Virus record (IMG/VR): IMGVR_UViG_3300026097_000876
Coordinates: 1 to 64,000 of that record
Length of the DNA stretch: 64,000 bases
Strand: one strand, 5' to 3'
Below the pieces are notes generated by a model. That model was not told where the DNA came from. It did not search any database and was given only the letters and a program-made list of their open reading frames with translations. The position numbers and the translations under genes are program-made. Of the stretch, positions 18-23,234 are shown piece after piece. Numbering within the stretch: the stretch's first letter is position 1; each line of letters opens with the position of its first letter.

Positions 18-93
<76 letters not shown>

Positions 94-97
94 AATA

Positions 98-172
98 TGG
101 TGGAGGATGGGAGGGTCGAACTCCCGACTTCGCCGTGCAAGGGCAATGTTTTCCCAACTATACTAATCCCCC
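98..172 (-). tRNA. tRNA-Ala(UGC)
   Basis: Anticodon loop CTTGCAC; G3:U70 pair; encoded CCA. Confidence 0.95.
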
Positions 173-176
173 AAAG

Positions 177-260
177 TGGTGGAGAGTGATGGATTCGAAC
201 CACCGCGCAGTTACGACCTGATTTACAGTCAGGTGCTTTCGACCACTCAGCCAACTCTCC
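177..260 (-). tRNA. tRNA-Tyr(GUA)
   Basis: CCTGA-CTGTAAA-TCAGG; long variable arm; CCA. Confidence 0.95.
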
Positions 261-302
261 GCAAACTTGGGACTGTCTTTAAGGCGCAGTCATTCCTTTA
301 AA

Positions 303-379
303 TGGCTCCGGATGAGGGACTCGAACCCCCGCAGACGCGGTTTTGGAGACCGCCGCTCTTCCAACTGAGCTAATCCGGA
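303..379 (-). tRNA. tRNA-Trp(CCA)
   Basis: GCGGT-CTCCAAA-ACCGC; CCA end. Confidence 0.95.
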
Positions 380-385
380 ATAAAA

Positions 386-462
386 TGGTCGGGATTGCTG
401 GATTCGAACCAACGACATCATGCTCCCAAAGCATGCACTCTACCAGACTGAGCTAAACCCCG
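386..462 (-). tRNA. tRNA-Pro(UGG)
   Basis: CATGC-TTTGGGA-GCATG; CCA end. Confidence 0.95.
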
Positions 463-466
463 ATAT

Positions 467-542
467 TGGAGCCACGGACAGGAGTTGCACCTGCATAGTA
501 AGGATTTGCAGTCCTCTGCCTAACTGTTCGAGCCACCGTGGC
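467..542 (-). tRNA. tRNA-Cys(GCA)
   Basis: Anticodon loop CTGCAAA; U73 discriminator; variant T-loop TGCAACT. Confidence 0.9.
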
Positions 543-549
543 GTAAATT

Positions 550-634
550 TGGCGACAGCGTGTAGACGGTGCCTCGCTCCACCGTTTCGTGTCGACCGGG
601 TTACCCCACAGTCCAGATCACTACACTTAACCCA
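550..634 (-). ncRNA. CCA-terminated structured non-tRNA RNA between tRNA-Asn and tRNA-Cys
   Basis: Stems GTGTAG/CTACAC, ACGGTG/CACCGT, GGG-GTAA-CCC; ends GTCGCCA; no T-loop or anticodon arm. Confidence 0.55.
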
Positions 635-640
635 CGAAAG

Positions 641-716
641 TGGCTGCCCGAGCAGGACTCGAACCTGCGACCAAGAGATTAACAGTCTCCTGCTCTACCA
701 ACTGAGCTATCAGGCA
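641..716 (-). tRNA. tRNA-Asn(GUU)
   Basis: GGAGA-CTGTTAA-TCTCT; CCA end. Confidence 0.95.
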
Positions 717-725
717 ATAAACTAA

Positions 726-758
726 TGAGCAGTTTCATCCACACTTGCTCAGGTGTGG
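726..758 (-). ncRNA. Small H-type pseudoknot motif, copy A
   Basis: S1 CCACAC/GTGTGG, S2 TGAGCA/TGCTCA, loop ending AAAC. Confidence 0.6.
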
Positions 759-827
759 CCGGCCGGCATTTGTTAATCGTTAAAAGCCATTAGGTCTTAC
801 AAGCCTGATGCCTAAACAGAGCAGGAA

Positions 828-855
828 CAAGCAGTTTAAAATCATACTCAGGATC
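828..855 (-). ncRNA. Small H-type pseudoknot motif, copy B
   Basis: S1 GATC/GATT, S2 TGAGTA/TGCTTG, loop ending AAAC. Confidence 0.55.
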
Positions 856-901
856 ATCACAATAGGGGAACTCTAAGAGCGCAAACCCTAATGCCTATAC
901 T

Positions 902-1074
902 AAAACACATTAGAAAGTGTGCTTATTTTTATTGCCCGATAGCCTAGGATTTGGCAGGGTCTGTCTAATGCGTCTACAAGGTAGCTAATCCTCTACGACG
1001 AGCTAGGACACTTACAGTTCACGCTGGGGTTACCACACTGAACTCAACCCTAAGCACACTTTCTAATGTATTTT
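902..1074 (-). ncRNA. ~170-nt structured element closed by a 24-bp stem
   Basis: Inverted repeat AAAATACATTAGAAAGTGTGCTTA / TAAGCACACTTTCTAATGTGTTTT (one G.U); internal AGTTCA/TGAACT stem; no ORF; promoter directly upstream. Confidence 0.55.
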
Positions 1075-1075
1075 C

Positions 1076-1120
1076 TCTAACTGTTATACACAGTATAAAG
1101 TCGTGTTATTGTTTTGTCAA
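1076..1120 (-). promoter_or_regulatory. Sigma70-type early promoter
   Basis: TTGACA-17 nt-TATACT followed by GTGTATAACAGTTAG. Confidence 0.8.
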
Positions 1121-1121
1121 C

Positions 1122-1221
1122 CTTATTATAAAGCACACTACGGAATCGAACCGTTTTTTGTGTTGTAACACCTATCGCCACGACCTAGTAGCTACTATAG
1201 GCTAGTGTGCTTTATAATAAG
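1122..1221 (-). ncRNA. tRNA-like element lacking a canonical anticodon arm and CCA
   Basis: 19-bp closing stem, TA-GCCT...AGGT D-like arm, ACGG-TTCGATT-CCGT T-arm. Confidence 0.55.
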
Positions 1222-1321
1222 TGCTGGGCTATCCCCAGCTTGACCTATCTTGTAACATCCAGGCCGCCGCCCATTTATTTTTTATAGTGCTTGTAGGTTC
1301 GCGTTACCATTTGCACTTGCA

Positions 1322-1355
1322 TTAAAAAACCCCGGAGTATTTCTACTTCGGGGTT
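1322..1355 (-). terminator. Intrinsic terminator (part of putative attenuator)
   Basis: AACCCCGAAGTA-GAAA-TACTCCGGGGTT followed by U run. Confidence 0.8.
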
Positions 1356-1381
1356 CCGTATAATCTGTTAACTTAACTAAA

Positions 1382-1480
1382 CTATACGGAACTCCCACGA
1401 TCATAAATCCAACCACAGAACATCCCCGCCGGATTCGACTGGACCTCTGTTGTGTTCTTATGCATCGTTTTGTTCATCAT
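1382..1480 (-). CDS. Putative 32-aa leaderless leader peptide MMNKTMHKNTTEVQSNPAGMFCGWIYDRGSSV
   Basis: ATG 6 nt after the -10 hexamer; stop codon lies in the 5' arm of an antiterminator hairpin. Confidence 0.55.
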   Translation of the reverse strand: MMNKTMHKNTTEVQSNPAGMFCGWIYDRGSSV

Positions 1481-1486
1481 AGTGTT

Positions 1487-1516
1487 ATATTAACCTCGTT
1501 GACTCTGTTTGTCAAC
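1487..1516 (-). promoter_or_regulatory. Sigma70-type promoter with overlapping GTTGAC-N7-GTCAAC palindrome
   Basis: TTGACA-17 nt-TAATAT; dyad at 1498-1516. Confidence 0.65.
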
Positions 1517-1546
1517 CTCTTTTTACCTTTTTATTTATCTTTTTTC

Positions 1547-1621
1547 TGGAGCGGGTAGCGAGAATCGAACTCGCATCTAAGCGTTGGCAACGCTTTGTAA
1601 TAACCATTATACGATACCCGC
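1547..1621 (-). tRNA. tRNA-Gly(GCC)
   Basis: AAGCG-TTGCCAA-CGCTT; U73; CCA. Confidence 0.95.
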
Positions 1622-1628
1622 AATATTT

Positions 1629-1937
1629 TTAAATACGCTGTCCTGGTTCATAAAACTGAAATGTCTTGCCAGCGGCAAACACACAGGCTATGTCATTATC
1701 TTTATTCACAACTATAAAGCTCCAAGACTGTGTTTCTGTGTTTATCCACAGTGACGAATACAGTAAGCTGTCATTTCCCTCAGCAATGCCTTCACTTAGA
1801 AATATTAGTTCTTCGTTGTACTCTTGTTTTATAAAGTCAAGTACTATCTCTGTTTTAGCGCAATCAACTGGAACGTCATATACTTCTGCTTTTGCTGGTG
1901 AGGCGATGAGCAAAAACATCGCCAATAGGTATTTCAT
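1629..1937 (-). CDS. Small secreted hypothetical protein inside the tRNA cluster
   Basis: GGAGAG RBS before ATG 1937; signal peptide MKYLLAMFLLIASPAKA. Confidence 0.7.
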   Translation of the reverse strand: MKYLLAMFLLIASPAKAEVYDVPVDCAKTEIVLDFIKQEYNEELIFLSEGIAEGNDSLLYSSLWINTETQSWSFIVVNKDNDIACVFAAGKTFQFYEPGQRI

Positions 1938-1950
1938 TTTTCTCTCCAAA

Positions 1951-1978
1951 TGAGTAGTTTTAAAACTTACTCAGGTTT
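1951..1978 (-). ncRNA. Small H-type pseudoknot motif, copy C
   Basis: S1 AAAC/GTTT, S2 TGAGTA/TACTCA; ends 3 nt before the RBS of the next gene. Confidence 0.55.
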
Positions 1979-2200
1979 ACCTTTCCTGGGCACCATTTGC
2001 TCAATTGTTTTACAAGGGGAACAAAACCCTTAAAAATTTTTACACAATGCAAAGAGTGAGTGGTTAACCAATGCATCGACCTAGCTACTTGATAAACTAT
2101 GTCTATCTTTCACTACTTTCAGGCGGTTCAGGCCTTTATCGCCGTCTCCCTAAGGAGCTTGTGTCTAGGTCTTTTTATAGTAGTACCGAATCTACATATT

Positions 2201-2277
2201 TGGTGCCGCTGGAGGGAGTCGAACCCCCAACCTTCTGGACCTAAACCAGACGCCTCTGCCAATTGGGCTACAGCGGC
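2201..2277 (-). tRNA. tRNA-Leu(UAG) with short variable loop
   Basis: TCTGG-TTTAGGT-CCAGA; A73; 77 nt; 5-nt variable region. Confidence 0.85.
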
Positions 2278-2291
2278 AAATATCATATTTA

Positions 2292-2382
2292 TGGCGGAGA
2301 TGGAGGGATTCGAACCCTCGATACGCTATTAACGTATACTCCCTTAGCAGGGGAGCGCGATCGACCACTCTGCCACATCTCC
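2292..2382 (-). tRNA. tRNA-Ser(GCU)
   Basis: CTCCC-CTGCTAA-GGGAG; long variable arm; G73; CCA. Confidence 0.95.
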
Positions 2383-2481: not shown

Positions 2482-3078
2482 CTACCTCATTAAAGTAGAA
2501 ACATCAATATATGATTGGTCTAATGTGTTAAAACTAATAGTGTATCTTTCGTCACTAGAGTTTCTTTGAGTCTCATGATAAAGATAACTAGGCCAAATTA
2601 TTAATTTTCCTGCTTTAGTTGGTATTGCAACATTTTCTATATTATATTCTGTATCATGCTGTTTGGTTTCTGACATCTTAAAAACTGTAGTAGGATTTTC
2701 AATTATTAACGCACAATCATCTGGATCACTAGTTGGATAGTATGCTCCACTTAATACACTCTTTTCATGTCGATGTCTTTTAACTTTGCCGCCTTCTTTG
2801 AGAACATTACACCAACTGTTTACAATAGTGTTTTGTTGTATTCCTGCCTGATCGCAATACACACGCAAACAAGCATCAATTGATTGTCGTAAATCAGCCA
2901 TCGCTAACCTTGTAAGAGCACAATCATATCCTCCAATATAGCTGCTAAGTCCTTTCTCTAAGACTCCGTGCATCTGTAGTCCGCTAATTTGAATTTTCTT
3001 CATAATCACATCGTTATCGACTTGATCAGAAAGATCAAACTCTGCTACAAGAGTAGGAAATAGATTGTGCATTAACAC
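2482..3078 (-). CDS. Putative 2OG-Fe(II) oxygenase (TIGR02466-like)
   Basis: HRHE...SGAYY...IIWPSYLYHET...RYTISFN. Confidence 0.8.
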   Translation of the reverse strand: MLMHNLFPTLVAEFDLSDQVDNDVIMKKIQISGLQMHGVLEKGLSSYIGGYDCALTRLAMADLRQSIDACLRVYCDQAGIQQNTIVNSWCNVLKEGGKVKRHRHEKSVLSGAYYPTSDPDDCALIIENPTTVFKMSETKQHDTEYNIENVAIPTKAGKLIIWPSYLYHETQRNSSDERYTISFNTLDQSYIDVSTLMR

Positions 3079-3461: not shown

Positions 3462-4079
3462 TTAACGTGCTTCTGCCACTTTATCAGCAAGACCATATTC
3501 TACAGCTTCTTCTGCTGTTAAGAATGTATCAAACTTCATTGTTTCAAATAGCTCTTCGTAGCCTTTGCCTGCTGTGTTGTGTTTTACATACAGTTCGGTT
3601 AGGCGTTTGTTAATCTTTTTACTTTCTTCAAATGCACGTTTTGCATCTTCAAACTCAAGTTCTTGTACATGTACGCTACCGCTTGTGCCACGTGTACCTG
3701 AACTTACACGGTGAATCATTGTGCGGCTTTCTGGCAACACTACACGCTTGCCTGCTGTACCTGCTTGTGCTAGGAAACTACCCATTGAACATGCTTGGCC
3801 CATTACAATAGTTTGCACATCGCATTTGATATACTGCATTGTGTCGTAGATAGCAAGTCCTGCTGTTACAGCACCGCCTGGGCTATTAATATACAGATTA
3901 ATTGTTTTCTCTGGATTTTGTGATTCAAGAAAAAGTAACTGTGCTACAATTACATTGGCCATGTGATCTTCAACTGGACCGTTTAACATCACAATACGAT
4001 CCTTTAGCAACCGACTATAAATGTCGTATGCTCGTTCGCCTTTTGCTTCTTTTTCAACCACCATTGGAATTAGTGCCAT
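3462..4079 (-). CDS. clpP: ATP-dependent Clp protease proteolytic subunit
   Basis: [27 protein letters not shown] (Ser), MIH (His), [15 protein letters not shown]. Confidence 0.95.
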
Positions 4080-4312
4080 TAACGTTGTCTCCCTTGTTTT
4101 ACATCATAATATTTTGGGCCATCGGAAACGAATTCCATGCCTAGTGCTTTACCAAAGTATTCACCTGTTTTATTGTTATACTTCAATACAATTTTATTAC
4201 CAGCAACGCTTACTGTCAACCCGTCTTCTACTCTAAAATTCATAACTTCAGCGTCGACTTCTATATTAGTGTCTACGTTTTTTAATTTGCACGTGTCTTC
4301 GTGTTTAATCAT
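4079..4312 (-). CDS. Hypothetical protein
   Basis: Tightly packed ORF in the operon. Confidence 0.6.
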
Positions 4313-4496
4313 TTTCAGATTCGTCCCATTTAAGAATTTTCATATCTTTTCCTTTGCCTTGAGTTTTAAGATACCCTTTTTCAATCAATGCATCAATAAC
4401 AGCTCCAGCATCGTTAGTAGATTTAATGTACCAGCCAAACGCAGTACCAATAATATATGCAATAAAAATCCAAAATTCGTTTACCCACATTTCCAT
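4305..4496 (-). CDS. Small membrane protein
   Basis: One hydrophobic helix FWIFIAYIIGTAFGWYI. Confidence 0.6.
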   Translation of the reverse strand: MEMWVNEFWIFIAYIIGTAFGWYIKSTNDAGAVIDALIEKGYLKTQGKGKDMKILKWDESEND

Positions 4497-4507
4497 TAGT
4501 TGTTTCC

Positions 4508-4783
4508 TTAATTTTCGTATAAGTCAGATCGATCGTCGCCGTTAAGGTTACGCATCAGTTCTTGGTTTTCCCGCTCGACTTTCTGTTTAGCATCACGCCA
4601 CATGTCGCGAATTAGAAAAGCAAAAAAAGGAAGAATCATAAATATCAGTGCTGTAATAATAGCGCCGCCTTCATAAACGTTTTTTTCAATATAAACTGCT
4701 AATGCTATTACACTCCAAACGTATACAGCAACACCTACTGGGACTGCAAGATTTTTAAGAAAGTGTTTCCATACTCTAGGCAT
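4508..4783 (-). CDS. Two-TM membrane protein
   Basis: Two hydrophobic helices; GGAG RBS. Confidence 0.6.
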   Translation of the reverse strand: MPRVWKHFLKNLAVPVGVAVYVWSVIALAVYIEKNVYEGGAIITALIFMILPFFAFLIRDMWRDAKQKVERENQELMRNLNGDDRSDLYEN

Positions 4784-4793
4784 TTTAATCTCC

Positions 4794-5588
4794 TTATACC
4801 TTGTATAGTTTTACATAGTTAAGACGTGTTTCGTCTGCGCTGAACATACGATTCTTTGTATGCGACTTTACTTTAGCTTTAAGACGCTTGCGAGCACCTA
4901 CAGCGTGTTCGTACTTGTTCATGAAGCTAACTAGGTTGCCGTCAACTACACCTACGTAGTTGTAGCTCTCCCACTGACTGCTGTAACGCTTGTCCAGTAT
5001 TTCAATTACACCTTCTACAGTTGCGCCAACAGGCTCAATGTGACGGCTGTCACGGTACTCAATACGGATAGTTTTTGTAAGACTTGCCTCGTGCTGATCA
5101 CGTGCGATAAACTCCGGAGCAAACGCAATACGGCCCATGCTCTTAACCGCTACTTGGTCTTGCGACAGTTCTTTAACCATATCTACCTTGAAGCTGTCCA
5201 GCTCACCCAAGCCCAGCATCACATAACGCTTCATCCACTTGCGAGCCTCTTCTACACTAGCATAGTCTGCTTCAGTAGGTTCAAACATTTCAAAGTCTGT
5301 AGGAAGATACTTTGCGTCAGCAGTGTCCAACTTCTTAGCCCAGTAGAAACGCACAAGACTCTTATTGTCAAACTGTGTCTTGTTGTCTTCTGAGAAGCGA
5401 CGAGTGTCTTTGGTGTAAGTGTTGCCGTTGATGCGATATACTGCATACGCTACAGCAAGTGCGTCTGCTAGACTTACCGTTTTCAAAGGAACAGTTCTGT
5501 AAGATTTGTTGTGACTGTGCTTTAGAGCTTCGTCTTCGTGACGTAGTTCAAATGCAATTTCATCTTTTTTGAATTGTGAAAGTGCCAT
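4794..5588 (-). CDS. Hypothetical early protein
   Basis: Own TTGACA/TATACT promoter at ~5614-5640 and AGAGG RBS. Confidence 0.7.
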   Translation of the reverse strand: MALSQFKKDEIAFELRHEDEALKHSHNKSYRTVPLKTVSLADALAVAYAVYRINGNTYTKDTRRFSEDNKTQFDNKSLVRFYWAKKLDTADAKYLPTDFEMFEPTEADYASVEEARKWMKRYVMLGLGELDSFKVDMVKELSQDQVAVKSMGRIAFAPEFIARDQHEASLTKTIRIEYRDSRHIEPVGATVEGVIEILDKRYSSQWESYNYVGVVDGNLVSFMNKYEHAVGARKRLKAKVKSHTKNRMFSADETRLNYVKLYKV

Positions 5589-11031: not shown

Positions 11032-11079
11032 TGTGCCTGATTACTCTACTATAATATAATCAGGCACACGGTTTGTCAA
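11032..11079 (-). promoter_or_regulatory. Sigma70 promoter with -10 enclosed by a 12-bp inverted repeat
   Basis: TTGACA-17-TATTAT; arms TGTGCCTGATTA / TAATCAGGCACA. Confidence 0.75.
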
Positions 11080-11101: not shown

Positions 11102-11662
11102 TTAAATGTTTTGCAAATATTTTAATACTTTCTTTGGATCTGTTTCTCCGTAAGGATCGTCATCGTCACCGCAATCATTAATGCCTGGCTCTTCGAACCA
11201 TTTCTCCACTACACCGTCCTTGATTACTGCGGCATATCGCCAAGAGCGATTACCAAAGCCGACATGATCTTTGCATACTAACATGCCCATGCGCTGAGTA
11301 AGTTGACCCGAGCCGTCTGGAATAAATTTAATATGCTGAATACCTTGATCAATCATCCACTTGCGCATAACAAAAGTGTCGTTTACTGAAACAACATATA
11401 TTTCGTCAACGTCACAGTTGCGAATGTCATCGTACAATTCTTCAAATCCGGGTACTTGATACGTACTGCAGGTCGGAGTAAATGCTCCGGGTAGCGAAAA
11501 AACAACGATTCTCTTGTTGTTAAAAATTTCGTCAGTTGTAACTTCTTTCCAGTCAAATGGGTTTTCACTTCCATTGTTATTGTTTACATATGTTATAGGG
11601 TGTCCGTCTGTACGAACACGATAATGAAAAGTAACTGGTGGTACTTTTACGCCTTCTTTCAT
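11102..11662 (-). CDS. Peroxiredoxin (Prx5 family)
   Basis: FSLPGAFTPTCS, VSVNDTFVM, RSWRYA. Confidence 0.9.
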   Translation of the reverse strand: MKEGVKVPPVTFHYRVRTDGHPITYVNNNNGSENPFDWKEVTTDEIFNNKRIVVFSLPGAFTPTCSTYQVPGFEELYDDIRNCDVDEIYVVSVNDTFVMRKWMIDQGIQHIKFIPDGSGQLTQRMGMLVCKDHVGFGNRSWRYAAVIKDGVVEKWFEEPGINDCGDDDDPYGETDPKKVLKYLQNI

Positions 11663-11905
11663 TTATTTCTCCATTTTAAATAGTTTTCGCCCTAATGGCG
11701 ATATTGGTTCTTGTGGAACCGGTTTCTTCCCTGTTTGTTCTTCTACCATCATTAACAGTCTGGTAGCATGCCCGTGCTTTCTATACACGGGATTTACAAA
11801 AATATATTCTATTTCCGCTTGTTCATCGTATCTCACAAACGCAATAGTAGTATTAGTGTTCTTGAAAGTGATGACGCCATCACCATAGATGACGTCCCAC
11901 ATCAT
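11663..11905 (-). CDS. Small GNAT acetyltransferase
   Basis: IEYIFVNPVYRKHGHATRLL acetyl-CoA motif A. Confidence 0.7.
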   Translation of the reverse strand: MMWDVIYGDGVITFKNTNTTIAFVRYDEQAEIEYIFVNPVYRKHGHATRLLMMVEEQTGKKPVPQEPISPLGRKLFKMEK

Positions 11906-12609
11906 GATGCTCGTGCTAACAGCATGTCGCGAATGTGTCCAATTGCTCTAGTAGGATTAAGTCCTTTAGGACACACACTCACACAGTTCATAATACCTCT
12001 GCAACGAAACACCGAGAATGGATCTTCAAGGTTTGTTAATCGTTCTTCGGTGGCATCGTCTCTGGTATCTGCCAAGAAACGATAACTGGTGAGCAGTGCC
12101 TGTGGTCCAAGAAACTTGTCTGGATTCCACCAATAACTGGGACAGCTGGTTGAGCAACATGCACACATGATACACTCGTATAAGCCATCCAGTTTGGCAC
12201 GATCCTCTGGGCTCTGTAGCCTTTCCTGCGTGGGTGCTACAGTGCTGTTGGTAAGAGTGGGCATTACTTTTGCATAGCTCTTGTAGAACTGTGTCATGTC
12301 CACAACCAAGTCGCGAATAACTGGCATACCTGGAAGCGGACGAATAACCAACTTCTTGCCGTTAGGAGCAATCTCCGACACTGGAGTAATGCAAGCCAGT
12401 CCGTTCTTACCGTTCATGTTCACACCGTCACTACCACAAACACCCTCCCTGCAACTCCTACGGAAGGTGAGGGTTTGGTCCTGTTCTTTGGCACGAATCA
12501 TAACATCCAGCACCATTAAGTCCTTGTCTGCAGGGACATCTACTTCGACTTCCTGCATCCACGGTGCTCGATCCGTTTCCGGATTATAACGATAAACACT
12601 AACTTGCAT
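11902..12609 (-). CDS. sdhB: Succinate dehydrogenase iron-sulfur subunit
   Basis: RRSCREGVCGSD, CIMCACCSTSCPSYWW, FRCRGIMNCVSVCPKGL. Confidence 0.95.
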   Translation of the reverse strand: MQVSVYRYNPETDRAPWMQEVEVDVPADKDLMVLDVMIRAKEQDQTLTFRRSCREGVCGSDGVNMNGKNGLACITPVSEIAPNGKKLVIRPLPGMPVIRDLVVDMTQFYKSYAKVMPTLTNSTVAPTQERLQSPEDRAKLDGLYECIMCACCSTSCPSYWWNPDKFLGPQALLTSYRFLADTRDDATEERLTNLEDPFSVFRCRGIMNCVSVCPKGLNPTRAIGHIRDMLLARAS

Positions 12610-12619
12610 TGTGTTCTCC

Positions 12620-13054
12620 TTAGGCGTTTTCTTCTCGGTATGCGTCTAAAGTTTTCTTGAACTTGTTAGCATGCGAGCGTTCTGCTTTGGCTAGGGTTTC
12701 AAACCAATCAGCGATTTCATCATATCCTTCGTCGCGAGCAGTTTTAGCCATTCCCGGGTACATATCTGTGTATTCATGTGTTTCACCAGCAATCGCTGAC
12801 TCCAGTGCTTCTTCCACTGTCTTAGCGGCAAGCCCTGTCTCCGGATCACCTGAACCACCTTCGATTAGATATTCCATATGTCCATGTGCGTGTCCAGTTT
12901 CGCCTTCCGCAGTATTACGGAATACATTGGCTACATCTGGTGCACCTTGAATGTCTGCTTCGTTTGCGAAGTAGAGATAACGACGGTTTGCTTTTGACTC
13001 ACCTGCGAAAGCATCTTGCAATGCTTTTTCTGTTCCTGTTCCTTTCAATGACAT
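12620..13054 (-). CDS. Short-chain rubrerythrin (ferritin-like di-iron)
   Basis: AFAGES...ETGHAHGH...[15 protein letters not shown]...AERSH. Confidence 0.9.
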
Positions 13055-13200
13055 ATTTGTCTCCTTGTATCTTAAAAAGAATGTTGATCCTTCAACTTGT
13101 GAATAATCCTTCATTGTGTTATTGTATAGGTATTTACAATATAAATCAACCTAAAAATAGGTCAAGTCTATGTTATTTTTCAATGGATACAATAGATATT

Positions 13201-13737
13201 TTAAATTGGTGATTCGCGGCGGATGCCTAATGCTTTGTATGCAGGATATAGTTCTACGTTTACTTTGTTGTTTTGATTACCGCCGAGTATTTTATAATAA
13301 GTTATATCGCCTACATTAACAGTACCGAAGTAAAAACCTACATGTCCTTGCCACTGTGAGCCGCCTCTTGGAAATACTATAATATCTCCAGGCTGCGGCT
13401 CACCTGTGACTTTCTCGCCCCAGTCAAGAAAACTGCGAGCCAAGAGAGGATAATCACTTACACTTTCTGATCCTGGGGTATTGCTGTCTCTAAGAACAGC
13501 ATTAACAAATGCTGCGCACCATTCTGTACGTACAGGATCAACACCTGTAAGTTGTTTTAGCTCTGCCCTATGCGTTTGTTCTCCATAGTTTAGATACTGA
13601 AACGCAATCATTGTTGTCATAGCTGCAGGTTTAGGTTTCTCAAACAAACTTTCAATAGCTGGTTTCCTGTCAATACCTTGTACATCAGTACAACCAGCTA
13701 TTGCTGTTAGCAACAACAAAAAAGCTACAAACCGCAT
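13201..13737 (-). CDS. TIGR02594-family NlpC/P60-CHAP amidase, lipoprotein-like
   Basis: EWCAAFVN, GDIIVFPRG...GHVGFY...LGGNQ; IAGC lipobox. Confidence 0.85.
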   Translation of the reverse strand: MRFVAFLLLLTAIAGCTDVQGIDRKPAIESLFEKPKPAAMTTMIAFQYLNYGEQTHRAELKQLTGVDPVRTEWCAAFVNAVLRDSNTPGSESVSDYPLLARSFLDWGEKVTGEPQPGDIIVFPRGGSQWQGHVGFYFGTVNVGDITYYKILGGNQNNKVNVELYPAYKALGIRRESPI

Positions 13738-14339
13738 CAGTTAGCCAACGGATTGTCCAGCGCACGTTGTAGGCGTCTGTTTAAACGATCTTCAAGTTCT
13801 TTTAGATCGCGAGCAACCCCGTCTTCAAGATCAATAATACGATTGTCATTACGCTCTGCTAAACGATTTGCTTTTTCGTCATAGTCGTTTTGTAGTGCGT
13901 CACGCTTGTTTTCAAAACGCTCTTCTGCATTAGAAATAACTGCACGGTTCTCGTCTTCTTGCTCACGCAACTTGTCTTCCATACGGTCAACACTCTTTTC
14001 AATTGATAGAATGTCATCACGTAGTCCGCTCTTGATATCACGAGTATAATCTACTGCTTCTTCGAGTTTTAGTTCAATTACTTCCATACGCTGATCGTAA
14101 TCTGCAATCTTTTGCTCATACTCTTGTTGTTGGTCAACAAACGCAATTGCTTCTTCTATTTTTTGATACATCAAGAAGCCTCCGTATAGTGAACCAATTA
14201 CGGCACCTACTACACTTAACATTGCTGTTGCACTTACGAATGTTACTTTTATTCCAAGGATACGAAACTCTTTGTTTTTGAGATCTTCGATGCCTTGCTC
14301 CATATTTTCTAGGCCTTCACCTAAATCCTTATCACTCAT
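13737..14339 (-). CDS. Single-TM coiled-coil protein
   Basis: TM near the N-terminus followed by long heptad-rich helix. Confidence 0.65.
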   Translation of the reverse strand: MSDKDLGEGLENMEQGIEDLKNKEFRILGIKVTFVSATAMLSVVGAVIGSLYGGFLMYQKIEEAIAFVDQQQEYEQKIADYDQRMEVIELKLEEAVDYTRDIKSGLRDDILSIEKSVDRMEDKLREQEDENRAVISNAEERFENKRDALQNDYDEKANRLAERNDNRIIDLEDGVARDLKELEDRLNRRLQRALDNPLAN

Positions 14340-14492: not shown

Positions 14493-17024
14493 TCATTTCA
14501 TTTTCTCATATTGTAAATCTACCATTTCTTGGTGTAATAACTGTTGTGCAAGTCCGTTGCGTAGCCCTCGTTGATTCTCCGGAACTTTCTCGTCTGCGTA
14601 AAATGCTTGATCAGCATATATATCACCGCCCGGTATACCTACCTGTCCGTAAGCATTAAATCCTGGCACAAAGTTAATCAGTGCCGCTATCTGTGCCTGT
14701 AAGGCCTGCTGTGCTTCTAGTGTTGCGGCTGCACCCATTGTCTCTGCAAGTGCCATTGCACGTTTAGTAGCAATTTCTTTCATTTTCTTGCGTTTGGCTT
14801 TTTGTTTTTCTTCGGCCGTCATTTCTTTCTTTTTTCCAGATTCTTGAGATCCTTCTTCTTTTGAATCATCTCCGCTATCCGACTCTCCTGATTTATCATC
14901 CCCTTCGCTATCAGATTTGGAATCTTCTTTGCTTGGTTCTTTTCGTTCGTCGCTAGTTTTGTCCCCTGCTGAATCCATTCGCTCGTCCACATTATCACGG
15001 GACTCTGATACTTCTTTTTCATTGCCGTCTTTCCCTTCTGTTTCTACCAAGGCAACCAGTTCTTGTTCCATTTGCTCTTCTTGGGATTCTTCTTTTGTTG
15101 TTCTTTCTTGTGTTGCTCTGGGTGTGTTCGTCGCCACAGTTCTTTCTGTTTGCGGTGCAGGTATAGATATTGCAGGTCCTCTATCCACCACTTGATTTGT
15201 TGTAGCATTGTTAGTCCCCCTCAATACTTCATCAACCGTGCTATCGCCTGTAGCACTTGGTTGTGTTAGTGCCGCAACAGGATCTTCTGCTGTTTGAGCA
15301 TCTACTGTGGTGTTAGTTGCTGTGCTTGACGCATCATCATTGCTAACTCCTGCTGCCTGTTCTGCCTGTTTGTCTAATCCTGGTTTGATATATTTGTCGT
15401 AGTATGCGGCTTGATACCCCGAGCAACCTGCATCATAAAGTGCGTCTAACCCACATTGCTGATCGTAGTAAGCCACCGCATAGCCTGGGCACTGTGTGTC
15501 GTACAGTGCATCTAAACCACACTGCTGGGCGTAGAATGCGTCTGCGTAGCCATTACAGCCAGTATCATACAGTGGATTTAAACTACACTGATTGTCGTAG
15601 TATGCTTGTTCATAGCCAGGACAGCCTGAATCATATAGTGCATTAACTGAACACTGTTGATCATAATATGCTGATTGATATCCAGGGCAACCACTGTCAT
15701 ATAATGGATCAATACCGCATTGTTGATCATAATATGCTGATTGATATCCAGGGCAACCACTGTCATATAATGGATCAATACCGCATTGTTGATCATAATA
15801 TGCTGACTGATATCCAGGACAACCACTGTCATATAACGGATCGGCACTACACTGCTGATCGTAGTACGCACTAGCATATCCTGGACAATTTGTATCATAG
15901 AAAGGATCTGCACTACACTGTTGGTCATAGTAGGCTTGTTCGTATCCTGGGCAACCTGAATCATATAACGGATCAGCACTACATTGTTGTTCATAATATG
16001 CTTGTTGGTAGCCCGAACAACTCGGTGAGTACAACGGATCGGCATTACATTGCTGTTGTTCGTAGGCTTGTTGATATCCAGGACAACCTGGATCGTACAT
16101 TGGATCAGCTGTACAATTATTATTGTACTCTTGTTCAGCGTATGCTTCGCCATATCCTTCACAACTTGGATCGTATAGAGGATTAGCCGCACAAGGATCA
16201 GCACGATAGATAAACTGTAGATTTACATCTTTAACTTCAGGTCCGTAGTATCCGCCCCAATATCCGCCATCTTGCCCTGTAATACGAATACTAGCACTAC
16301 TAGGGTCAAGATATGATGTCCCAAATGCCTGTAGGAATTCTTCTGTTGTCCATTGGTCTGTTGTGCCGTAGCCTGATCCATCGCTACGATCATATGAATA
16401 TCGTTCTACAACTGCGCCGGAACTGTCTTTTACTTCAACATCAAATTGAAGTATATCACCGTCTCTGCCATTGTTGCCTATGCGTCTCCAAGTCCAGCCA
16501 TAGCTGAGTCCATCTAGTTGTATTCCACTTTGTGCTAGTGCTTGGTTAATAGCAATAGTCTGTGCAAGGATATCTCGACCATATGAGAACATAATGGTAT
16601 CAGTGGACTGATCGTATAGAGCACCATTACCGCTTATACTTGAACAACACCCACCTGGATCGTTACCGTAAGTAGCGCCGTCCCAAGCATTGTTGTCGAT
16701 TACATTCGGTGATAGTGTGTTACTACCGTCGTATTCTAACATAGTATAACCAGGGGCGATTTCATCACAGTCAAGTCCAAACCCAGTAACAGTCATATTA
16801 ACATCGTCACGTAGACAGATGCCACTACCATCAGGTCTGTATGAATAACTTTCTACGCCTGCTCCAGGTAATGACATGTAGAAGTCTTGGACTGCCTGAT
16901 ATTCAGGTTGACTCCACGTTTTGTTGTCGAATCTTTGCTGTGCGTTAGAAGGCGACGCCGCCGGTAGCAACACCAATAATAATAGCACCGAGTATACCCA
17001 GTCCAATACCTTTAATTGTGTCAT
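14493..17024 (-). CDS. Secreted protein with 12 Cys/Tyr-rich 22-aa repeats and a charged C-terminal region
   Basis: Signal peptide; repeat CxxDPLYDSGCPGYQxAYYDQQ. Confidence 0.8.
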   Translation of the reverse strand: MTQLKVLDWVYSVLLLLVLLPAASPSNAQQRFDNKTWSQPEYQAVQDFYMSLPGAGVESYSYRPDGSGICLRDDVNMTVTGFGLDCDEIAPGYTMLEYDGSNTLSPNVIDNNAWDGATYGNDPGGCCSSISGNGALYDQSTDTIMFSYGRDILAQTIAINQALAQSGIQLDGLSYGWTWRRIGNNGRDGDILQFDVEVKDSSGAVVERYSYDRSDGSGYGTTDQWTTEEFLQAFGTSYLDPSSASIRITGQDGGYWGGYYGPEVKDVNLQFIYRADPCAANPLYDPSCEGYGEAYAEQEYNNNCTADPMYDPGCPGYQQAYEQQQCNADPLYSPSCSGYQQAYYEQQCSADPLYDSGCPGYEQAYYDQQCSADPFYDTNCPGYASAYYDQQCSADPLYDSGCPGYQSAYYDQQCGIDPLYDSGCPGYQSAYYDQQCGIDPLYDSGCPGYQSAYYDQQCSVNALYDSGCPGYEQAYYDNQCSLNPLYDTGCNGYADAFYAQQCGLDALYDTQCPGYAVAYYDQQCGLDALYDAGCSGYQAAYYDKYIKPGLDKQAEQAAGVSNDDASSTATNTTVDAQTAEDPVAALTQPSATGDSTVDEVLRGTNNATTNQVVDRGPAISIPAPQTERTVATNTPRATQERTTKEESQEEQMEQELVALVETEGKDGNEKEVSESRDNVDERMDSAGDKTSDERKEPSKEDSKSDSEGDDKSGESDSGDDSKEEGSQESGKKKEMTAEEKQKAKRKKMKEIATKRAMALAETMGAAATLEAQQALQAQIAALINFVPGFNAYGQVGIPGGDIYADQAFYADEKVPENQRGLRNGLAQQLLHQEMVDLQYEKMK
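15405..16200 (-). repeat. 66-nt coding tandem repeat, 12 units
   Basis: Near-identical units at ~15655-15845 indicate recent duplication. Confidence 0.85.
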
Positions 17025-19002: not shown

Positions 19003-19686
19003 TTATGCCAGTTTAGGAAATAACATATCTGTGCAGAACTTATCAACATCGTCTTCGGCAAGACCTAAACTTTTCATAACCCTAGGAGTATGAGGATTTT
19101 GTTGCTGATTATGACAGTAATAATTTTGTCCGGCTGTAACTAATTCTTGAATTCCATATCCATTAAACTCACCAACTTGGTCAAGATACTCGTGTAAGTT
19201 AGAAAGTGCAATGTCAATAATAACACCAGCTTCGTCTTCTTTCACATTGCTTGCTGCAATCATACTAGGCGTAAAGATATTAGTAGCCCATTCAGGTAGT
19301 TGTCGTTTTTTCTCTGGAATAAATTCTTTTACAGTTTCTTCGTACCATTGAACCATAGGATGGTCTAGTTCGCAACTGGGCGAAAAGTCGTGAAATGCAC
19401 CTGTCATTTTAGATTTACCTGAAATTACATCAAATCCATATATTGGTGCTGTGTTGTGAAGTTGTGGGAAGACACAAACATGCATCATCCACAATCCTTT
19501 TGTGTCTCGAGCATCAACTACATCAATGTGAGCTCTTCGAACATCTTCATTTTCCCAAACTCTATTAATCCAACCACCATCGGGTTGATTGAAGTGTGCC
19601 ATTCCTGGTTCTTCAACTTCAACCCCATGATGATCAAACGCTTGAATGATTTGATCTTTACAATCAATAAGTTGATCCCAGATCAT
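19003..19686 (-). CDS. Ferredoxin-dependent bilin reductase (PcyA/PcyX-like)
   Basis: MMHVCVFP, GAFHDFSP, LPEWATNIF, QNYYCHNQQQNPHT; adjacent to heme oxygenase. Confidence 0.85.
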   Translation of the reverse strand: MIWDQLIDCKDQIIQAFDHHGVEVEEPGMAHFNQPDGGWINRVWENEDVRRAHIDVVDARDTKGLWMMHVCVFPQLHNTAPIYGFDVISGKSKMTGAFHDFSPSCELDHPMVQWYEETVKEFIPEKKRQLPEWATNIFTPSMIAASNVKEDEAGVIIDIALSNLHEYLDQVGEFNGYGIQELVTAGQNYYCHNQQQNPHTPRVMKSLGLAEDDVDKFCTDMLFPKLA

Positions 19687-19687
19687 A

Positions 19688-20278
19688 CTAGGAATATTCT
19701 AAATCGTTTAATTGCTCAAAAACTTTAACGGCAAATTCAAATGCTTTATTAGCTTCGTCTGCCATTCCGTCATGTGTGCGTCTGCGGATCATTTCCTTCA
19801 TTTCTTCAACCGAATGAGTCATTTCTTCAAATGCATACATTTTCCCAGAACCTGGAACTTTGCTTCTAATCATCTGTCCGCCTGACAAATCACCCATGTG
19901 TCTTACATAAATGTGTGCAAATAATTTGTCTGGATCATGCTGACACTGTGTGACAATATGTGATCTATACTCATGTACAGCATCAACTTCTGTTGGAGGA
20001 TTTTCTGGATCCCCACCTAACTCTACAAAGTCGGCCATAATATCGTCTGCCTGAATCAACCCGTCTAGTGGAAGATCATCATCTGGCATACTTAAATCTT
20101 GTGGGCCAAAACAACCCATACTTAATGCAACATCTTCTAGAACATCATACATTAACCACATGTTCCATAAGTATGTTTTATATTCTTCAGTGCTCATATT
20201 ACCAGACATCATTTTTCTTGCAAATTCCTGACGTTCTGCGTTCTGATGAGCTACTTGTGTTAAACTTGCTAAACTCAT
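19688..20278 (-). CDS. Heme oxygenase (HemO/Ho1-like)
   Basis: AHQNAE proximal His; HIYVRHMGDLSGGQMI. Confidence 0.9.
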   Translation of the reverse strand: MSLASLTQVAHQNAERQEFARKMMSGNMSTEEYKTYLWNMWLMYDVLEDVALSMGCFGPQDLSMPDDDLPLDGLIQADDIMADFVELGGDPENPPTEVDAVHEYRSHIVTQCQHDPDKLFAHIYVRHMGDLSGGQMIRSKVPGSGKMYAFEEMTHSVEEMKEMIRRRTHDGMADEANKAFEFAVKVFEQLNDLEYS

Positions 20279-20324: not shown

Positions 20325-20636
20325 CTATTCTTTTTCAATTGCCACTTGCAACGGAAACCCATTTTCCCTAGATAATTTAGTTGCTTCTAAAGATTTTTGT
20401 TCTGCTAATTCATAATTATAAAGACCAACTACAGAACTTCCGTTTTCATGAATTTCCATAGTAATGTTTCTTGCAACAATTTCCGAGTGTTTGAAAATTT
20501 CTATTAAAATTTCAACTACAAAATCCATCGGCGTAACGTCGTCGTTGAGCATAAGAACCTTGTACTTTCCTGGTTCAAGCATGATTTCTTTAGTAGATTC
20601 GTCTATGTTAATTTGTGTATCTAATTCTACGCTCAT
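20325..20636 (-). CDS. clpS: N-end rule adaptor ClpS
   Basis: YKVLMLNDDVTPMDFVV...MEIHENG. Confidence 0.9.
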   Translation of the reverse strand: MSVELDTQINIDESTKEIMLEPGKYKVLMLNDDVTPMDFVVEILIEIFKHSEIVARNITMEIHENGSSVVGLYNYELAEQKSLEATKLSRENGFPLQVAIEKE

Positions 20637-20653
20637 TTGTTTCTCCTAAAATA

Positions 20654-20682
20654 AAAATGGGGGAGATATCTCACTCCCCCTA
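20654..20682 (-). terminator. Intrinsic terminator after hsp20
   Basis: GGGGGAG-N9-CTCCCCC followed by T run. Confidence 0.65.
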
Positions 20683-20689
20683 GACTGTG

Positions 20690-21154
20690 TTACTCGCTGT
20701 CAATAGCGTCTTGCACATGACCGTTATAGTCTGTGATTTCAATACGCTTAGGCTGTAGTTCTTCTGGAACTTCACGCTTTAGATGTACGTTAAGCATGCC
20801 GTTTTCAAGGCCTGCACTTACTACTTCTACGTGATCAGCAAGTGTAAACTCTCTACGGAAATTGCGTTCGCCAATTCCTTTGTGCAGATAGTTTACGTTT
20901 TCACCCCCTTTAGGAGATGTACCTTCTACACGCAAGATATTCTTGTCCTTAGTAATGTCTAAGTTATCCATACCGAAGCCAGCGACTGCGAGAGTAATCA
21001 TAAACTCATCTTCGTCGATCTGTGCAATGTTGTATGGAGGATATCCTGTGCTCTGACTATTAGCAAATGATCTGTCTAGTTCATCAAATAGTCTGTCAAA
21101 GCCAATAGTAGCTCTGTGTAGGTTAGGTAGGTCTAGAGTTGTTAGTCTTGTCAT
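20690..21154 (-). CDS. Small heat shock protein (IbpA-like Hsp20)
   Basis: GFDRLFD, YPPYNI, YLHKGIGERNFRREFTLA. Confidence 0.95.
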   Translation of the reverse strand: MTRLTTLDLPNLHRATIGFDRLFDELDRSFANSQSTGYPPYNIAQIDEDEFMITLAVAGFGMDNLDITKDKNILRVEGTSPKGGENVNYLHKGIGERNFRREFTLADHVEVVSAGLENGMLNVHLKREVPEELQPKRIEITDYNGHVQDAIDSE

Positions 21155-21224: not shown

Positions 21225-22385
21225 TTAGTAACCAACAGTTGATTTTTCGTACACAGCATTATGTGTCTGTGTACATCTAACAAATGTAGTACATTTGCTA
21301 AGATTCTTTAGTTTTACTGCGCCAGCGTAAGTACAAGTACTACGCAACCCACCAAGAATACCTTGAACAGTATTACCCACTGTTCCTCGGTAAGGCACAA
21401 GAACTTCTCTTCCTTCACTGCTTCTATACTCCTTAAGTCCGCCAAAGTGTTTGTCATTGGCTGCTGTTGAGCTCATGCCATAGAACTGTACAAACTTCTT
21501 TTCTTCAATAACACGACGACCTTCATCCCAGTCAGTTCCGCTCATCTTAGGAACAGGACGTAGCTCATCTGTGGCATAGCGTTTGACAATTACTTCTCCA
21601 CCACCTTCATCGTGTCCGGCAAGCATGCCGCCCAGCATTACAAAGTCAGCGCCAGCGGCAAATGCTTTGGCTACGTCACCAGGGCAAGTGCAACCCCCAT
21701 CAGCAATAATATGGCCGCCGAGTCCGTGAGCCGCATCGGCACACTCAATAACAGCCGAGAGTTGAGGATAACCAACACCTGTCTGAATGCGAGTAGTACA
21801 CACACTACCAGGACCAATCCCAACTTTAACAATATCTGCTCCTGCAAGAATTAACTCCTCTGTCATTTCACCAGTAACTACATTACCGGCGATGATTACA
21901 ATATTTGGATACGTCTTACGCATCTCTGACACAAAGTCACGAAAGCGATTTGAATATCCATTTGCTACATCAATGCAAACATATTTTAGATTGCCGTCTG
22001 CACGATCATATACGTCTTTAAACTTGTTCCAGTCACTGTCATTAATACCAATGCTCATTGCTACATGATTAGTGCGTAGATATTCGTCTGTGTCAAAAAA
22101 GTCTACAAGCTCGTCTGCCGTGTATGTTTTTACAAGACAGGTAAACATACCCAAACGTGCAAGTTCATCTGCCATTTCAAACGTACCAACACCGTCCATA
22201 TTGGCCGCCATAATAGGAATTCCTTTATAGTGAGCATTTAAAACATTGTCAGGAAATTCTATTTCGGAGTTACGAAATGTATATTCACGCACCAACTCAA
22301 CTTCTTTACGACTACCAAGTGTGCTACGTTTAGGACGTATCAGCACATCTTTGTAATCTAGTTTGCTTTCGGTTTCGATTCTCAT
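21225..22385 (-). CDS. guaC: GMP reductase
   Basis: [39 protein letters not shown]. Confidence 0.95.
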
Positions 22386-22957
22386 CTTTTTACGCCATAA
22401 TTAAAACTAATTGAAATTCTGTCTTCATTAGTTACATTTGGTTGTACGCTATGTTTCATCCAACCAGGAAAAATATAAATTGCATCAGTCATAGCTTTGT
22501 ATGTTGTAGCTGTGCTAGTGAAATAATTAGGCTGTTCCATTGGAGGCAGAAAATACTCTGCGTTATCACTCCTTTCAAAAAACAAGTTTCCCTGCTCCGG
22601 AGTACTCTTTACGTAATAAACACCACTTAATATTGCACCTGCGTGATTATGTAAATGATTATATGCTCCGGGCTTATTGATATTAATCCAAATATTTTGT
22701 ATTTCCAACTCAGGAAGTTCAGACTGAACAGAACAATTAATCATCTCAGTATTGATAACTTTTACTAACTCATCAAACGCTTTGTTGTCGCCTTCCTTAA
22801 TTGAATTACTTTGCCAGCCAATATAATTAGAGACAGTAACACCGTCATCTGTTAACTGTCTGTCATATGCAAACGTAGACAATGCATCATTATCTACACC
22901 AGACAATAGTCCGGACCAGATTACACTAGGAAACCATTGTTCTGCCTGCAACGCCAT
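22382..22957 (-). CDS. Putative 2OG-Fe(II) oxygenase (TIGR02466-like)
   Basis: HLHNH...SGVYYV...FPGWMKHSV...RISISFN. Confidence 0.85.
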
Positions 22958-22958
22958 A

Positions 22959-23234
22959 TTAATAACCTCGTTCTGCTTGTTTTTTCTCAACAGTTTTGAG
23001 CCAACGTTTACGTCCAGCTGCTTTTGCTCTTGCACGTTTTTCGCTTGGTTTAATATATTCTCGACGTTCTTTTACTTCTTGTAATCTACCGTCTTCTTGA
23101 ACTTTCTTTTTGAACAATCGAAGAGCTTTACCTACATCGTCATTTCTTACTTCTACAGTAAGACCTTGTTTTTCTGTTTCGTTAGGACGAAACTGTTTTT
23201 TATTATTTCGATTGTTGTTATTGTGATATGCCAA
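22959..23234 (-). CDS. rpsU: Ribosomal protein bS21 homolog
   Basis: VEVRNDDVGKALRLFKKKV...REYIKPSEKR. Confidence 0.85.
   Translation of the reverse strand: MAYHNNNNRNNKKQFRPNETEKQGLTVEVRNDDVGKALRLFKKKVQEDGRLQEVKERREYIKPSEKRARAKAAGRKRWLKTVEKKQAERGY

Follow-up and report, generated by a model that had tools for sequence, protein, structure and literature searches.

The stretch of DNA analyzed here (the window; 64,000 nucleotides) is the first 64 kb of the linear, 261,806-bp IMG/VR virus record IMGVR_UViG_3300026097_000876, whose completeness is put by CheckV at 73%. It encodes, amid phage genes, a full-length iron-sulfur (Fe-S) subunit of succinate dehydrogenase (SDH; respiratory complex II) that is unaccompanied by the other subunits of this enzyme:

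11902..12609, minus strand: sdhB, succinate dehydrogenase iron-sulfur subunit, full-length, 235 amino acids (aa), with Pfam, NCBIfam, and PDB matches

As a host-derived metabolic gene located among viral genes in an IMG/VR record, this sdhB falls within the definition of an auxiliary metabolic gene (AMG). The gene is intact, has evolved under purifying selection, and recurs in several unrelated lineages of marine phages, and its product probably, if by no means certainly, joins the SdhA, SdhC, and SdhD subunits of the host, sustaining respiration during infection.

The identity of the protein is clear from comparisons with curated families. Its N-terminal part (residues 3-109) matches the Pfam domain Fer2_3 with 106 bits and has the plant-type 2Fe-2S ferredoxin fold, and the C-terminal dicluster domains match Fer4_17, Fer4_8, and Fer4_10; the scores against the NCBIfam models PRK05950 (351.7 bits; cut-off 228) and TIGR00384 (259.4 bits; cut-off 88) are well above the respective cut-offs. 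The alignment with SdhB from Escherichia coli (PDB entry 1nek_B; E value, 1.7e-111) spans residues 2-233 and brings all cluster ligands into register with those of the E. coli protein, whose ligands are numbered as in the 1NEK paper: C53, C58, D61, and C73 for the 2Fe-2S cluster, with Asp in the third position as in E. coli; C146, C149, C152, and C213 for the 4Fe-4S cluster; and C156, C203, and C209 for the 3Fe-4S cluster. The curated-family scores and this alignment bear out the first-pass annotation, which had described a full-length SdhB with all cluster ligands. In the 14 phage copies compared, the cysteines and prolines of the CxxCxxCxxxCP and CxxxxxCxxxCP motifs (C146, C149, C152, C156-P157, C203, C209, and C213-P214) are invariant, and so are the quinone-site residues P157, W161, and I206, the counterparts of E. 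coli P160, W164, and I209. The position of E. coli His207, a residue mutated in PDB entry 2wp9, is occupied by Arg. The best 120 matches listed in a word search for relatives of this SdhB are all at least 77% identical to it; the motif was located in 119 of these, among them SdhBs from named Litorivicinaceae, and every one of the 119 has the same Arg-Gly pair. A phage-specific change of the quinone site was therefore rejected, and this Arg appears to be a trait of the donor lineage, neither a defect nor a phage modification.

Conservation extends to the rest of the protein. Among 86 cellular gamma-type SdhBs, 119 positions show a conservation of at least 95%, and the window SdhB retains 116 of them, the exceptions being L37M, L95M, and F159Y. 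The phage clade to which it belongs has fixed several residues that are rare in cells (M37, M148, Q170, A174, Y178, and D228), along with the insertion of one residue into a loop at position 83; all the substitutions are conservative. One of these positions, residue 148 (about 12166-12168 in the window), lies between the first two cysteines of the 4Fe-4S cluster and is a Leu (YECI-L-CACC) in 64 of 67 cellular rows, whereas Met is found there in four of the five phage clades, namely, three gamma-type clades and a part of the alpha-type one, most members of which keep Leu. The recurrent Met148 may reflect shared ancestry; its interpretation as a convergent phage signature was set aside, since only a minority of the alpha-type phage group has Met, which is also present in 3 cellular rows. 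Pairwise ratios of nonsynonymous to synonymous substitution rates (dN/dS) among the phage sdhB copies are 0.03 to 0.09, in the same range as among cellular orthologs, with dS saturated. The G+C content of third codon positions (GC3) is 0.29 to 0.46 in the phage genes and 0.59 to 0.92 in the compared cellular orthologs, with the exception of an Endozoicomonadaceae metagenome-assembled genome (MAG; locus L033) at 0.41. Because the phage values are so far below those of most cellular orthologs compared, they argue for a long residence of sdhB in phage genomes.

The other SDH genes, noted earlier as absent from the window, are also absent from the remainder of the sequence: across the entire 261,806-bp record (73% complete), no match to FAD_binding_2 (SdhA) or Sdh_cyt (SdhC and SdhD) was obtained in a search in which control genomes gave matches. 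At least 19 further IMG/VR viral records carry sdhB, and FAD_binding_2 is found in none of these 19, which include a complete 200,733-bp genome with direct terminal repeats. The IMG/VR scan was seeded with peptide patterns from the window SdhB, so the count is a lower bound that is biased toward close relatives (49 to 86% identity). The joint encoding with SdhA and the SdhC/SdhD anchor that is expected of a typical SdhB or FrdB is thus not seen in the 262-kb record, and SdhA is likewise missing from the 19 other viral records.

The contig is not chimeric at this point, a possibility that the first-pass annotation had allowed for. The identical SdhB with the same neighbors is found on four contigs ranging from 16.8 kb to 331,644 bp; the two Joint Genome Institute (JGI) samples with this cassette, 3300026097 and 3300007609, share the locus and several identical phage contigs, may represent one sample assembled twice, and were not counted as independent. 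In the DNA sequencing run X1, exact Logan unitigs cover the region and one exact contig bridges the junction between sdhB and the adjacent rubrerythrin gene, with no single piece spanning the entire four-gene cassette described below. Ends and branch points of the X1 unitigs fall at the sdhB borders and within the rubrerythrin gene (11865-11902, 12293, 12793, and 12962), as would be expected if related phages in the sample had sdhB or the rubrerythrin cassette among other neighbors; related SdhB copies from the same JGI samples are 86% (L008 and L009) and 80% (L010 and L026) identical to that of the window. The surrounding genes are of the phage type and include those for a CHAP/baseplate-hub lysozyme (phrog_1259), a tail-fiber-like Mtd_N protein, ribonucleotide reductase, ClpP, ClpS, HSP20, and 10 tRNAs. 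The lone SdhB is neither an accident nor a chimera.

In a 215-row tree, the window SdhB falls into a 56-row clade (SH-aLRT support, 99) that consists of 5 known phage sequences and 51 unnamed ones and contains no named cellular member; all sampled members of this clade are encoded among phage-type genes without sdhA. Under a site-heterogeneous model applied to 97 rows, the clade (18 rows; support, 100/98) is sister to SdhB from Litorivicinaceae (99/96), a family of marine Gammaproteobacteria whose named members have SdhBs 77 to 79% identical to that of the phage and in which sdhB is part of a gltA-sdhC-sdhD-sdhA-sdhB-sucA-sucB operon (locus L114). Judging from this phylogeny, the likely host is a Litorivicinaceae-like marine gammaproteobacterium. 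Maximum-likelihood trees resolve five phage sdhB clades, among them an alpha-type clade whose nearest named cellular relative is an Alphaproteobacteria MAG. The idea of many independent acquisitions was not upheld, as the approximately unbiased (AU) test does not reject a single clade of all gamma-type phage copies (P = 0.361). Because the gamma-type copies may therefore be monophyletic, the robust minimum suggested by these trees is two acquisitions, one of the gamma type and one of the alpha type.

The genes found next to sdhB in other phages bear most of the mechanistic weight. Three jumbo-phage contigs, L004, L005, and L006, encode SdhBs that are identical to each other and 82% identical to the window SdhB. 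In the two ENA assemblies (L004:1495-7079 and L006:97-5681), a block of genes for cytochrome c, COX1 (536 bits), CtaG (CtaG/Cox11), an NqrB-like protein (NqrB/RnfD family; 343 bits), cytochrome b (224 bits), and COQ7 (149 bits) is located just upstream of sdhB and also includes SufE and DoxX, all verified by Pfam matches of 69 to 536 bits. The JGI contig L005 (a 300-kb contig of 300,116 bp) encodes a 100% identical SdhB with the same flanks and lacks the respiratory block. The block is therefore an island that varies between strains and encodes single core subunits from complexes III and IV and from the Na+-translocating NADH:quinone oxidoreductase (Na+-NQR). Other members of the window clade carry genes for cytochrome c, COQ7, SufE, peroxiredoxin, and rubrerythrin at a distance of 1 to 3 kb from sdhB.

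The alpha-type sdhB genes are found on T4-like contigs (gp32, gp59, baseplate genes, PhoH, and RNase H), where their neighbors encode IscU, IscA, cytochrome c, and peroxiredoxin. About 3.6 kb downstream of sdhB, these phages encode a 66-aa DUF1674 protein (Pfam, 62 bits) that matches human SDHAF4 (PDB entry 8dyd_C; E value, 1.5e-8) through the conserved C-terminal motif; no literature linking DUF1674 to SDHAF4 was found, and the connection is made here by the PDB match instead. SDHAF4 acts on flavinylated SdhA and promotes its assembly with SdhB, and a phage that carries both sdhB and an SDHAF4 homolog has a stake in the assembly of complex II. On two of the T4-like contigs (L113:10147-10529 and 3861-5501; L112:6016-6339 and 13598-14002), the DUF1674 protein is encoded next to a zf-CHCC mini-protein, and genes for IscU, IscA, cytochrome c, and SoxYZ lie near sdhB; the zf-CHCC family includes the NDUFS6-type subunit of complex I. 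In two other records, an IscU (NifU_N) gene is found directly upstream of sdhB (G014:C1:12043-12418 in L021 and G013:C1:1011-1386 in L020) as two overlapping profile pieces (positions 1-35 and 33-124) in separate open frames, which suggests that it is split or frameshifted; more short N-terminal copies lie nearby. None of the conserved small open reading frames (ORFs) that flank sdhB in the relatives (112 aa, 84 aa, and others) matches an assembly-factor family. The 262-kb record of the window phage itself has no matches to COX1, cytochrome b, NqrB, COQ7, cytochrome c, IscU, IscA, SufE, DUF1674, or Fer2.

The setting of sdhB in the window is a different one. The first-pass annotation had placed it in an oxidative-stress operon at 11102-13054, and all four ORFs of this cassette were found exactly there, on the minus strand, in the order rubrerythrin, sdhB, GNAT-like protein, and peroxiredoxin. 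Besides sdhB, the cassette and its borders comprise the following features:

13138..13165, minus strand: promoter-like site, TTGACC, 16-nucleotide spacer, TATATT (10 of 12 matches), ahead of the cassette in a 146-bp intergenic gap

12620..13054, minus strand: rubrerythrin, rubredoxin-less (erythrin/sulerythrin type), di-iron four-helix bundle, 144 aa; Pfam PF02915, 97.7 bits

11663..11905, minus strand: GNAT-like mini-protein, 80 aa; Pfam Acetyltransf_1, 24.9 bits (cut-off 20.7)

11102..11662, minus strand: Prx5-type peroxiredoxin, 186 aa; Pfam Redoxin, 80 bits; phrog_2281, 209.9 bits

11051..11079, minus strand: promoter-like site, TTGACA, 17-nucleotide spacer, TATTAT (11 of 12 matches), overlapping an inverted repeat, in the 90-bp gap downstream of the cassette

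The ORFs follow closely on each other: sdhB, preceded by its own Shine-Dalgarno sequence, begins 10 bp past the rubrerythrin gene, the start of the GNAT-like ORF overlaps the stop of sdhB by 4 bp, and the peroxiredoxin gene begins directly after the GNAT-like stop, with 0 bp in between. This layout is that of a single transcription unit. The promoter-like sites are consensus matches only, and the region gave 9 of them, against 6.6 expected; the one at 11051..11079 marks the downstream boundary of the cassette and probably serves the next gene, a 718-aa helicase-like ORF. An 11-bp perfect inverted repeat (GTGCCTGATTA … TAATCAGGCAC; 11035-11079, minus strand) overlaps the -10 element of this site and might act as an operator or, for the cassette, as a terminator.

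Two of the names given earlier to the products of the cassette need qualification. The rubrerythrin, whose ORF starts at an ATG with an AAGGAG ribosome-binding site, has the di-iron bundle but lacks the C-terminal Cys4 rubredoxin domain: its 144 residues cover positions 3-144 of the 194 positions of the NCBIfam model RuberyRbr, with 116.8 bits (below the cut-off of 200), and its best PDB matches, 4di0 (E value, 5.8e-60) and sulerythrin 1j30 (2.7e-49), are both rubredoxin-less proteins of 140 to 144 aa. It is 95% identical to its counterpart in the L005 phage (dN/dS, 0.04). The GNAT-like ORF scores above the Acetyltransf_1 cut-off but covers only positions 45-87 of the 116-position profile, i.e., the region of the acetyl-CoA-binding motif A, so that it is an 80-aa fragment and not a complete fold of ~150 aa with motifs A to D. 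It has no NCBIfam, PHROG, or PDB match, and it is retained in L005 between the rubrerythrin and peroxiredoxin genes (81% identity; dN/dS, 0.13). The peroxiredoxin contains the PGAFTPTC motif with the peroxidatic Cys, has no fused glutaredoxin domain, matches the peroxiredoxin domain of Haemophilus influenzae HI0572 (PDB entry 1nm3; E value, 1e-46), and belongs to a family, phrog_2281, annotated as "peroxyredoxin antioxidant."

The oxidative-stress setting holds for this phage but not for viral sdhB in general. Of 20 viral sdhB records, only 2 have rubrerythrin, 5 have a Redoxin-family peroxiredoxin, 2 have cytochrome c, and 3 have IscU, and the complete 200-kb genome has none of the four; it is therefore particular to the window phage that sdhB lies within a peroxidase cassette. 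In L005, the rubrerythrin-GNAT-peroxiredoxin trio stands separately, 6 kb from sdhB.

These observations are consistent with the following scenario. A jumbo-phage clade would have acquired sdhB long ago from a Litorivicinaceae-like gammaproteobacterium and retained it, with its product still fully functional. During infection, the phage SdhB would be translated, its three clusters would be loaded by the Fe-S machinery of the host (or of the phage), and the mature protein would assemble with the SdhA, SdhC, and SdhD subunits of the host into a hybrid complex II. Such a complex could maintain or raise the succinate:quinone oxidoreductase capacity and, with it, the flux through the tricarboxylic acid cycle and the respiratory chain and the production of ATP under the shut-down of host expression. 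In this particular phage, the erythrin and the Prx5-type peroxiredoxin, presumably co-transcribed with sdhB, would lower the peroxide level near the newly made Fe-S protein, and their presence in the cassette fits such protection. As to why sdhB should be carried alone, SdhB holds nine iron atoms in three clusters and requires maturation before assembly, and we infer that it is either the cofactor-heavy subunit that limits assembly or the most damage-prone one. The Fe-S scaffold genes next to sdhB in the relatives point to a bottleneck in cofactor supply or assembly at least as much as to damage by reactive oxygen species (ROS).

Assembly with host subunits is further suggested by structure prediction. 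The complex of the phage SdhB with Litorivicinaceae SdhA (L114) received a score of 0.95, compared to 0.00 for the best of three controls; the mark set for such predictions is reached by 51 of 78 solved complexes and by 2 of 108 mismatched pairs. The prediction runs shared at least 99% of the contacts, and the predicted local distance difference test (pLDDT) value of the partner was at least 90. The first-pass annotation had proposed that the phage resupplies SdhB to the host complex II as a ROS-labile subunit. Only the supply part of this proposal is in line with the purifying selection, the retained cofactor and interface positions, the predicted fit to SdhA, and the Fe-S, SDHAF4, and respiratory neighbors; a ROS-labile, rapidly turned over SdhB, replaced in the manner of the cyanophage psbA product, was an assumption of that annotation.

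Several points weigh against a hybrid complex II or against parts of this scenario. The complex prediction may draw on memory of solved complex II structures, so that it speaks for likeness and not for binding, and the positions at the predicted SdhA interface are not better conserved with respect to Litorivicinaceae than the rest of the protein (82% versus 77%; P = 0.70). A lookup of expression data found one DNA run containing the locus and no RNA run. With CheckV completeness at 73%, 27% of the phage genome is unseen, and the host assignment relies on the phylogeny of SdhB, a single gene. The association of sdhB with peroxide-detoxifying genes is, as noted, not general among viral sdhB records. 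In addition, the buried clusters of respiratory dehydrogenases are not classic targets of superoxide and peroxide, unlike those of dehydratases, which makes the ROS-lability rationale weak.

The same hybrid complex II could have a driver other than ROS. The phage might bypass the host shut-off or an iron-sparing down-regulation of SDH, with the supply of SdhB limiting assembly through Fe-S loading and with the erythrin and peroxiredoxin being independent stress genes that share an AMG island. This version, which we regard as rather unlikely, would account for the lack of rubrerythrin and Redoxin genes in most viral sdhB records, the complete 200-kb genome included; for the tightest sdhB neighbors in the relatives being IscU, IscA, SufE, and the SDHAF4-like protein and not peroxidases; and for the 6-kb distance between sdhB and the stress trio in L005. 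It accords less well with the translationally tight packing of sdhB within the peroxidase cassette of the window phage and with the peroxiredoxin genes located 1 to 6 kb from sdhB in four other lineages. It is improbable that the phage protein instead re-wires or poisons complex II by displacing the host SdhB, thereby lowering respiration or ROS, favoring fumarate reduction, or uncoupling SdhAB from the membrane. The fixed signature residues, including M148 between C146 and C149, and the recurrence of the L-to-M change at this position in several phage clades could be read in this way, but every signature substitution is conservative, the cluster ligands and quinone-site residues are the same as in the donor family, the Arg in place of His207 is shared with all 119 matches mentioned above, named Litorivicinaceae among them, and dN/dS is as low as in cellular orthologs.

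SdhB might also act apart from complex II, with the free protein delivering electrons through its Fe-S clusters to the erythrin, the Prx5-type peroxiredoxin without glutaredoxin, heme oxygenase, or a ferredoxin-dependent bilin reductase. Such a role would explain some peculiarities of this phage: the adjacent erythrin is devoid of the usual rubredoxin electron-entry domain, and genes for heme oxygenase and a PcyA-like bilin reductase are present, but no Fer2 ferredoxin is found in the 262-kb record; the N-terminal domain of SdhB has a plant-type 2Fe-2S ferredoxin fold. This role is, however, highly improbable, as conservation extends over the full length of the protein and takes in its C-terminal domain as well as the residues of the quinone site and of the predicted interface with SdhA; other sdhB phages have no such enzymes nearby; the SDHAF4 homolog encoded downstream of the alpha-type sdhB would act on SdhA; and SdhB is unstable without SdhA. 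The chance that the gene is an artefact of chimeric assembly or cellular contamination, or else a passenger captured recently and without function, is close to negligible. The G+C content of sdhB (48%, compared to a window average of about 40%) and the breaks of the X1 unitigs at its borders could raise that suspicion, which is countered by the four contigs with identical proteins and neighbors, the bridged junction, the 56-row clade without named cellular members and with all sampled members in phage contexts, saturated dS with dN/dS below 0.1, and GC3 values far below those of the compared cellular orthologs other than L033. None of the last three explanations is favored by the sequence data, and a hybrid complex II supplied in part by the phage is the reading that we retain.

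A gene for 5-aminolevulinate synthase (ALAS; 54411-55613, plus strand), mentioned in the first-pass annotation, is indeed present in the window (TIGR01821, 566.7 bits; cut-off 338.55), and heme oxygenase and the PcyA-like ferredoxin-dependent bilin reductase are encoded at 19688-20278 and 19003-19686, both on the minus strand, so that the phage has both an entry into and an exit from heme metabolism. ALAS is unusual for a phage of Gammaproteobacteria, which normally use the C5 route. Of the three 2-oxoglutarate (2OG) oxygenases listed earlier, two 2OG-Fe(II) oxygenases of the TIGR02466 family were found and the third was not located; a link of sdhB to the succinate released by such enzymes and to ALAS is speculation. 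These two oxygenases, along with GMP reductase (PRK05096, 522.8 bits), ClpP, ClpS, and HSP20, make up the host-like genes near the cassette (2482-3078, 21225-23035, 3462-4079, and 20325-21154). An 843-aa ORF (14493-17024, minus strand; 794 aa in the JGI version) encodes a protein with a signal-like N terminus, about ten tandem Cys-rich repeats of ~22 aa (…C.ADPLYDSGCPGYQSAYYDQQ…), and a tail that is acidic and rich in Ser and Lys; neither Pfam nor PHROG gave a match. The record starts with a tRNA array (18-2382, minus strand) of 10 genes, for Thr, Ala, Tyr, Trp, Pro, Cys, Asn, Gly, Leu, and Ser.

The closest parallel among known systems is provided by the cyanophage genes psbA and psbD, encoding the D1 and D2 proteins of photosystem II, and by the cyanophage photosystem I cassettes, which likewise supply host-derived core subunits of a membrane energy complex without the remainder, presumably for hybrid complexes; psbA and psbD share with phage sdhB the purifying selection and the phage-specific clades. 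The difference is in the target, here the respiratory complex II of heterotrophic bacteria, and in the kind of evidence: the rapid turnover of D1 is documented and the incorporation of cyanophage proteins has been shown experimentally, while the phage SdhB is known from sequence. The cellular SdhBs of sdhCDAB operons (E. coli 1NEK; Litorivicinaceae L114) have the same length and ligands and, in Litorivicinaceae, the same quinone-site residues but differ in having sdhC, sdhD, and sdhA next to them, in lacking phage genes around them and the clade signature substitutions, and, L033 excepted, in their higher GC3. Fe-S assembly AMGs (iscU/nifU, iscA, and sufE) and peroxiredoxins (phrog_2281) belong to the known repertoire of marine phages, with the Fe-S genes found near sdhB in the relatives and the peroxiredoxin in the cassette described here; in this case, however, it is the client Fe-S protein, SdhB, that is supplied and not just the machinery.

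Viral carriage of complex II genes is itself not new, being known from Nucleocytoviricota and from AMG catalogues of marine viromes. Eukaryotic giant viruses may carry several SDH subunits. Among the gene families of the Pacific Ocean Virome, "sdh" is listed (PMC4053976), and sdhB has been reported as a putative AMG in deep-sea viromes (PMC13720004). These marine reports, unlike the present one, remain at the level of catalogues, and the openly searchable literature yielded no study of phages that carry sdhB alone, of the phylogeny of this gene, or of the Fe-S and assembly-factor genes beside it, with an earlier report in a subscription journal being possible.

By analogy, we would class phage sdhB as a subunit-supply AMG of the psbA type, and the comparative pattern seems to be of more interest than the single locus. 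A tentative proposition, to which we give slightly less than an even chance, is that marine phages infecting hosts of two or more classes have on repeated occasions taken up the Fe-S subunit of complex II and no other, sometimes along with an SDHAF4-type factor and Fe-S scaffolds and, in strain-level variants of one jumbo phage, beside core subunits from complexes III and IV and from Na+-NQR as well as an enzyme of ubiquinone synthesis. This pattern would be the respiratory counterpart of the cyanophage photosystem genes, by which the phages rebuild the electron-transport chain of the host with hybrid complexes.

If the phage SdhB does join the host subunits, SdhB and the supply of Fe-S cofactors would be a bottleneck of the infected cell, and the phage SdhB, as a sister to the Litorivicinaceae proteins, would serve as a host-linking marker for this jumbo-phage clade. 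The phages would also offer natural hybrid variants of complex II for the study of subunit compatibility and assembly, including a phage-borne SDHAF4 homolog in a bacterial context. Should the phage SdhB assemble with host subunits, infected cells of abundant marine heterotrophs would respire partly on virus-encoded parts, much as photosynthesis proceeds in infected cyanobacteria.

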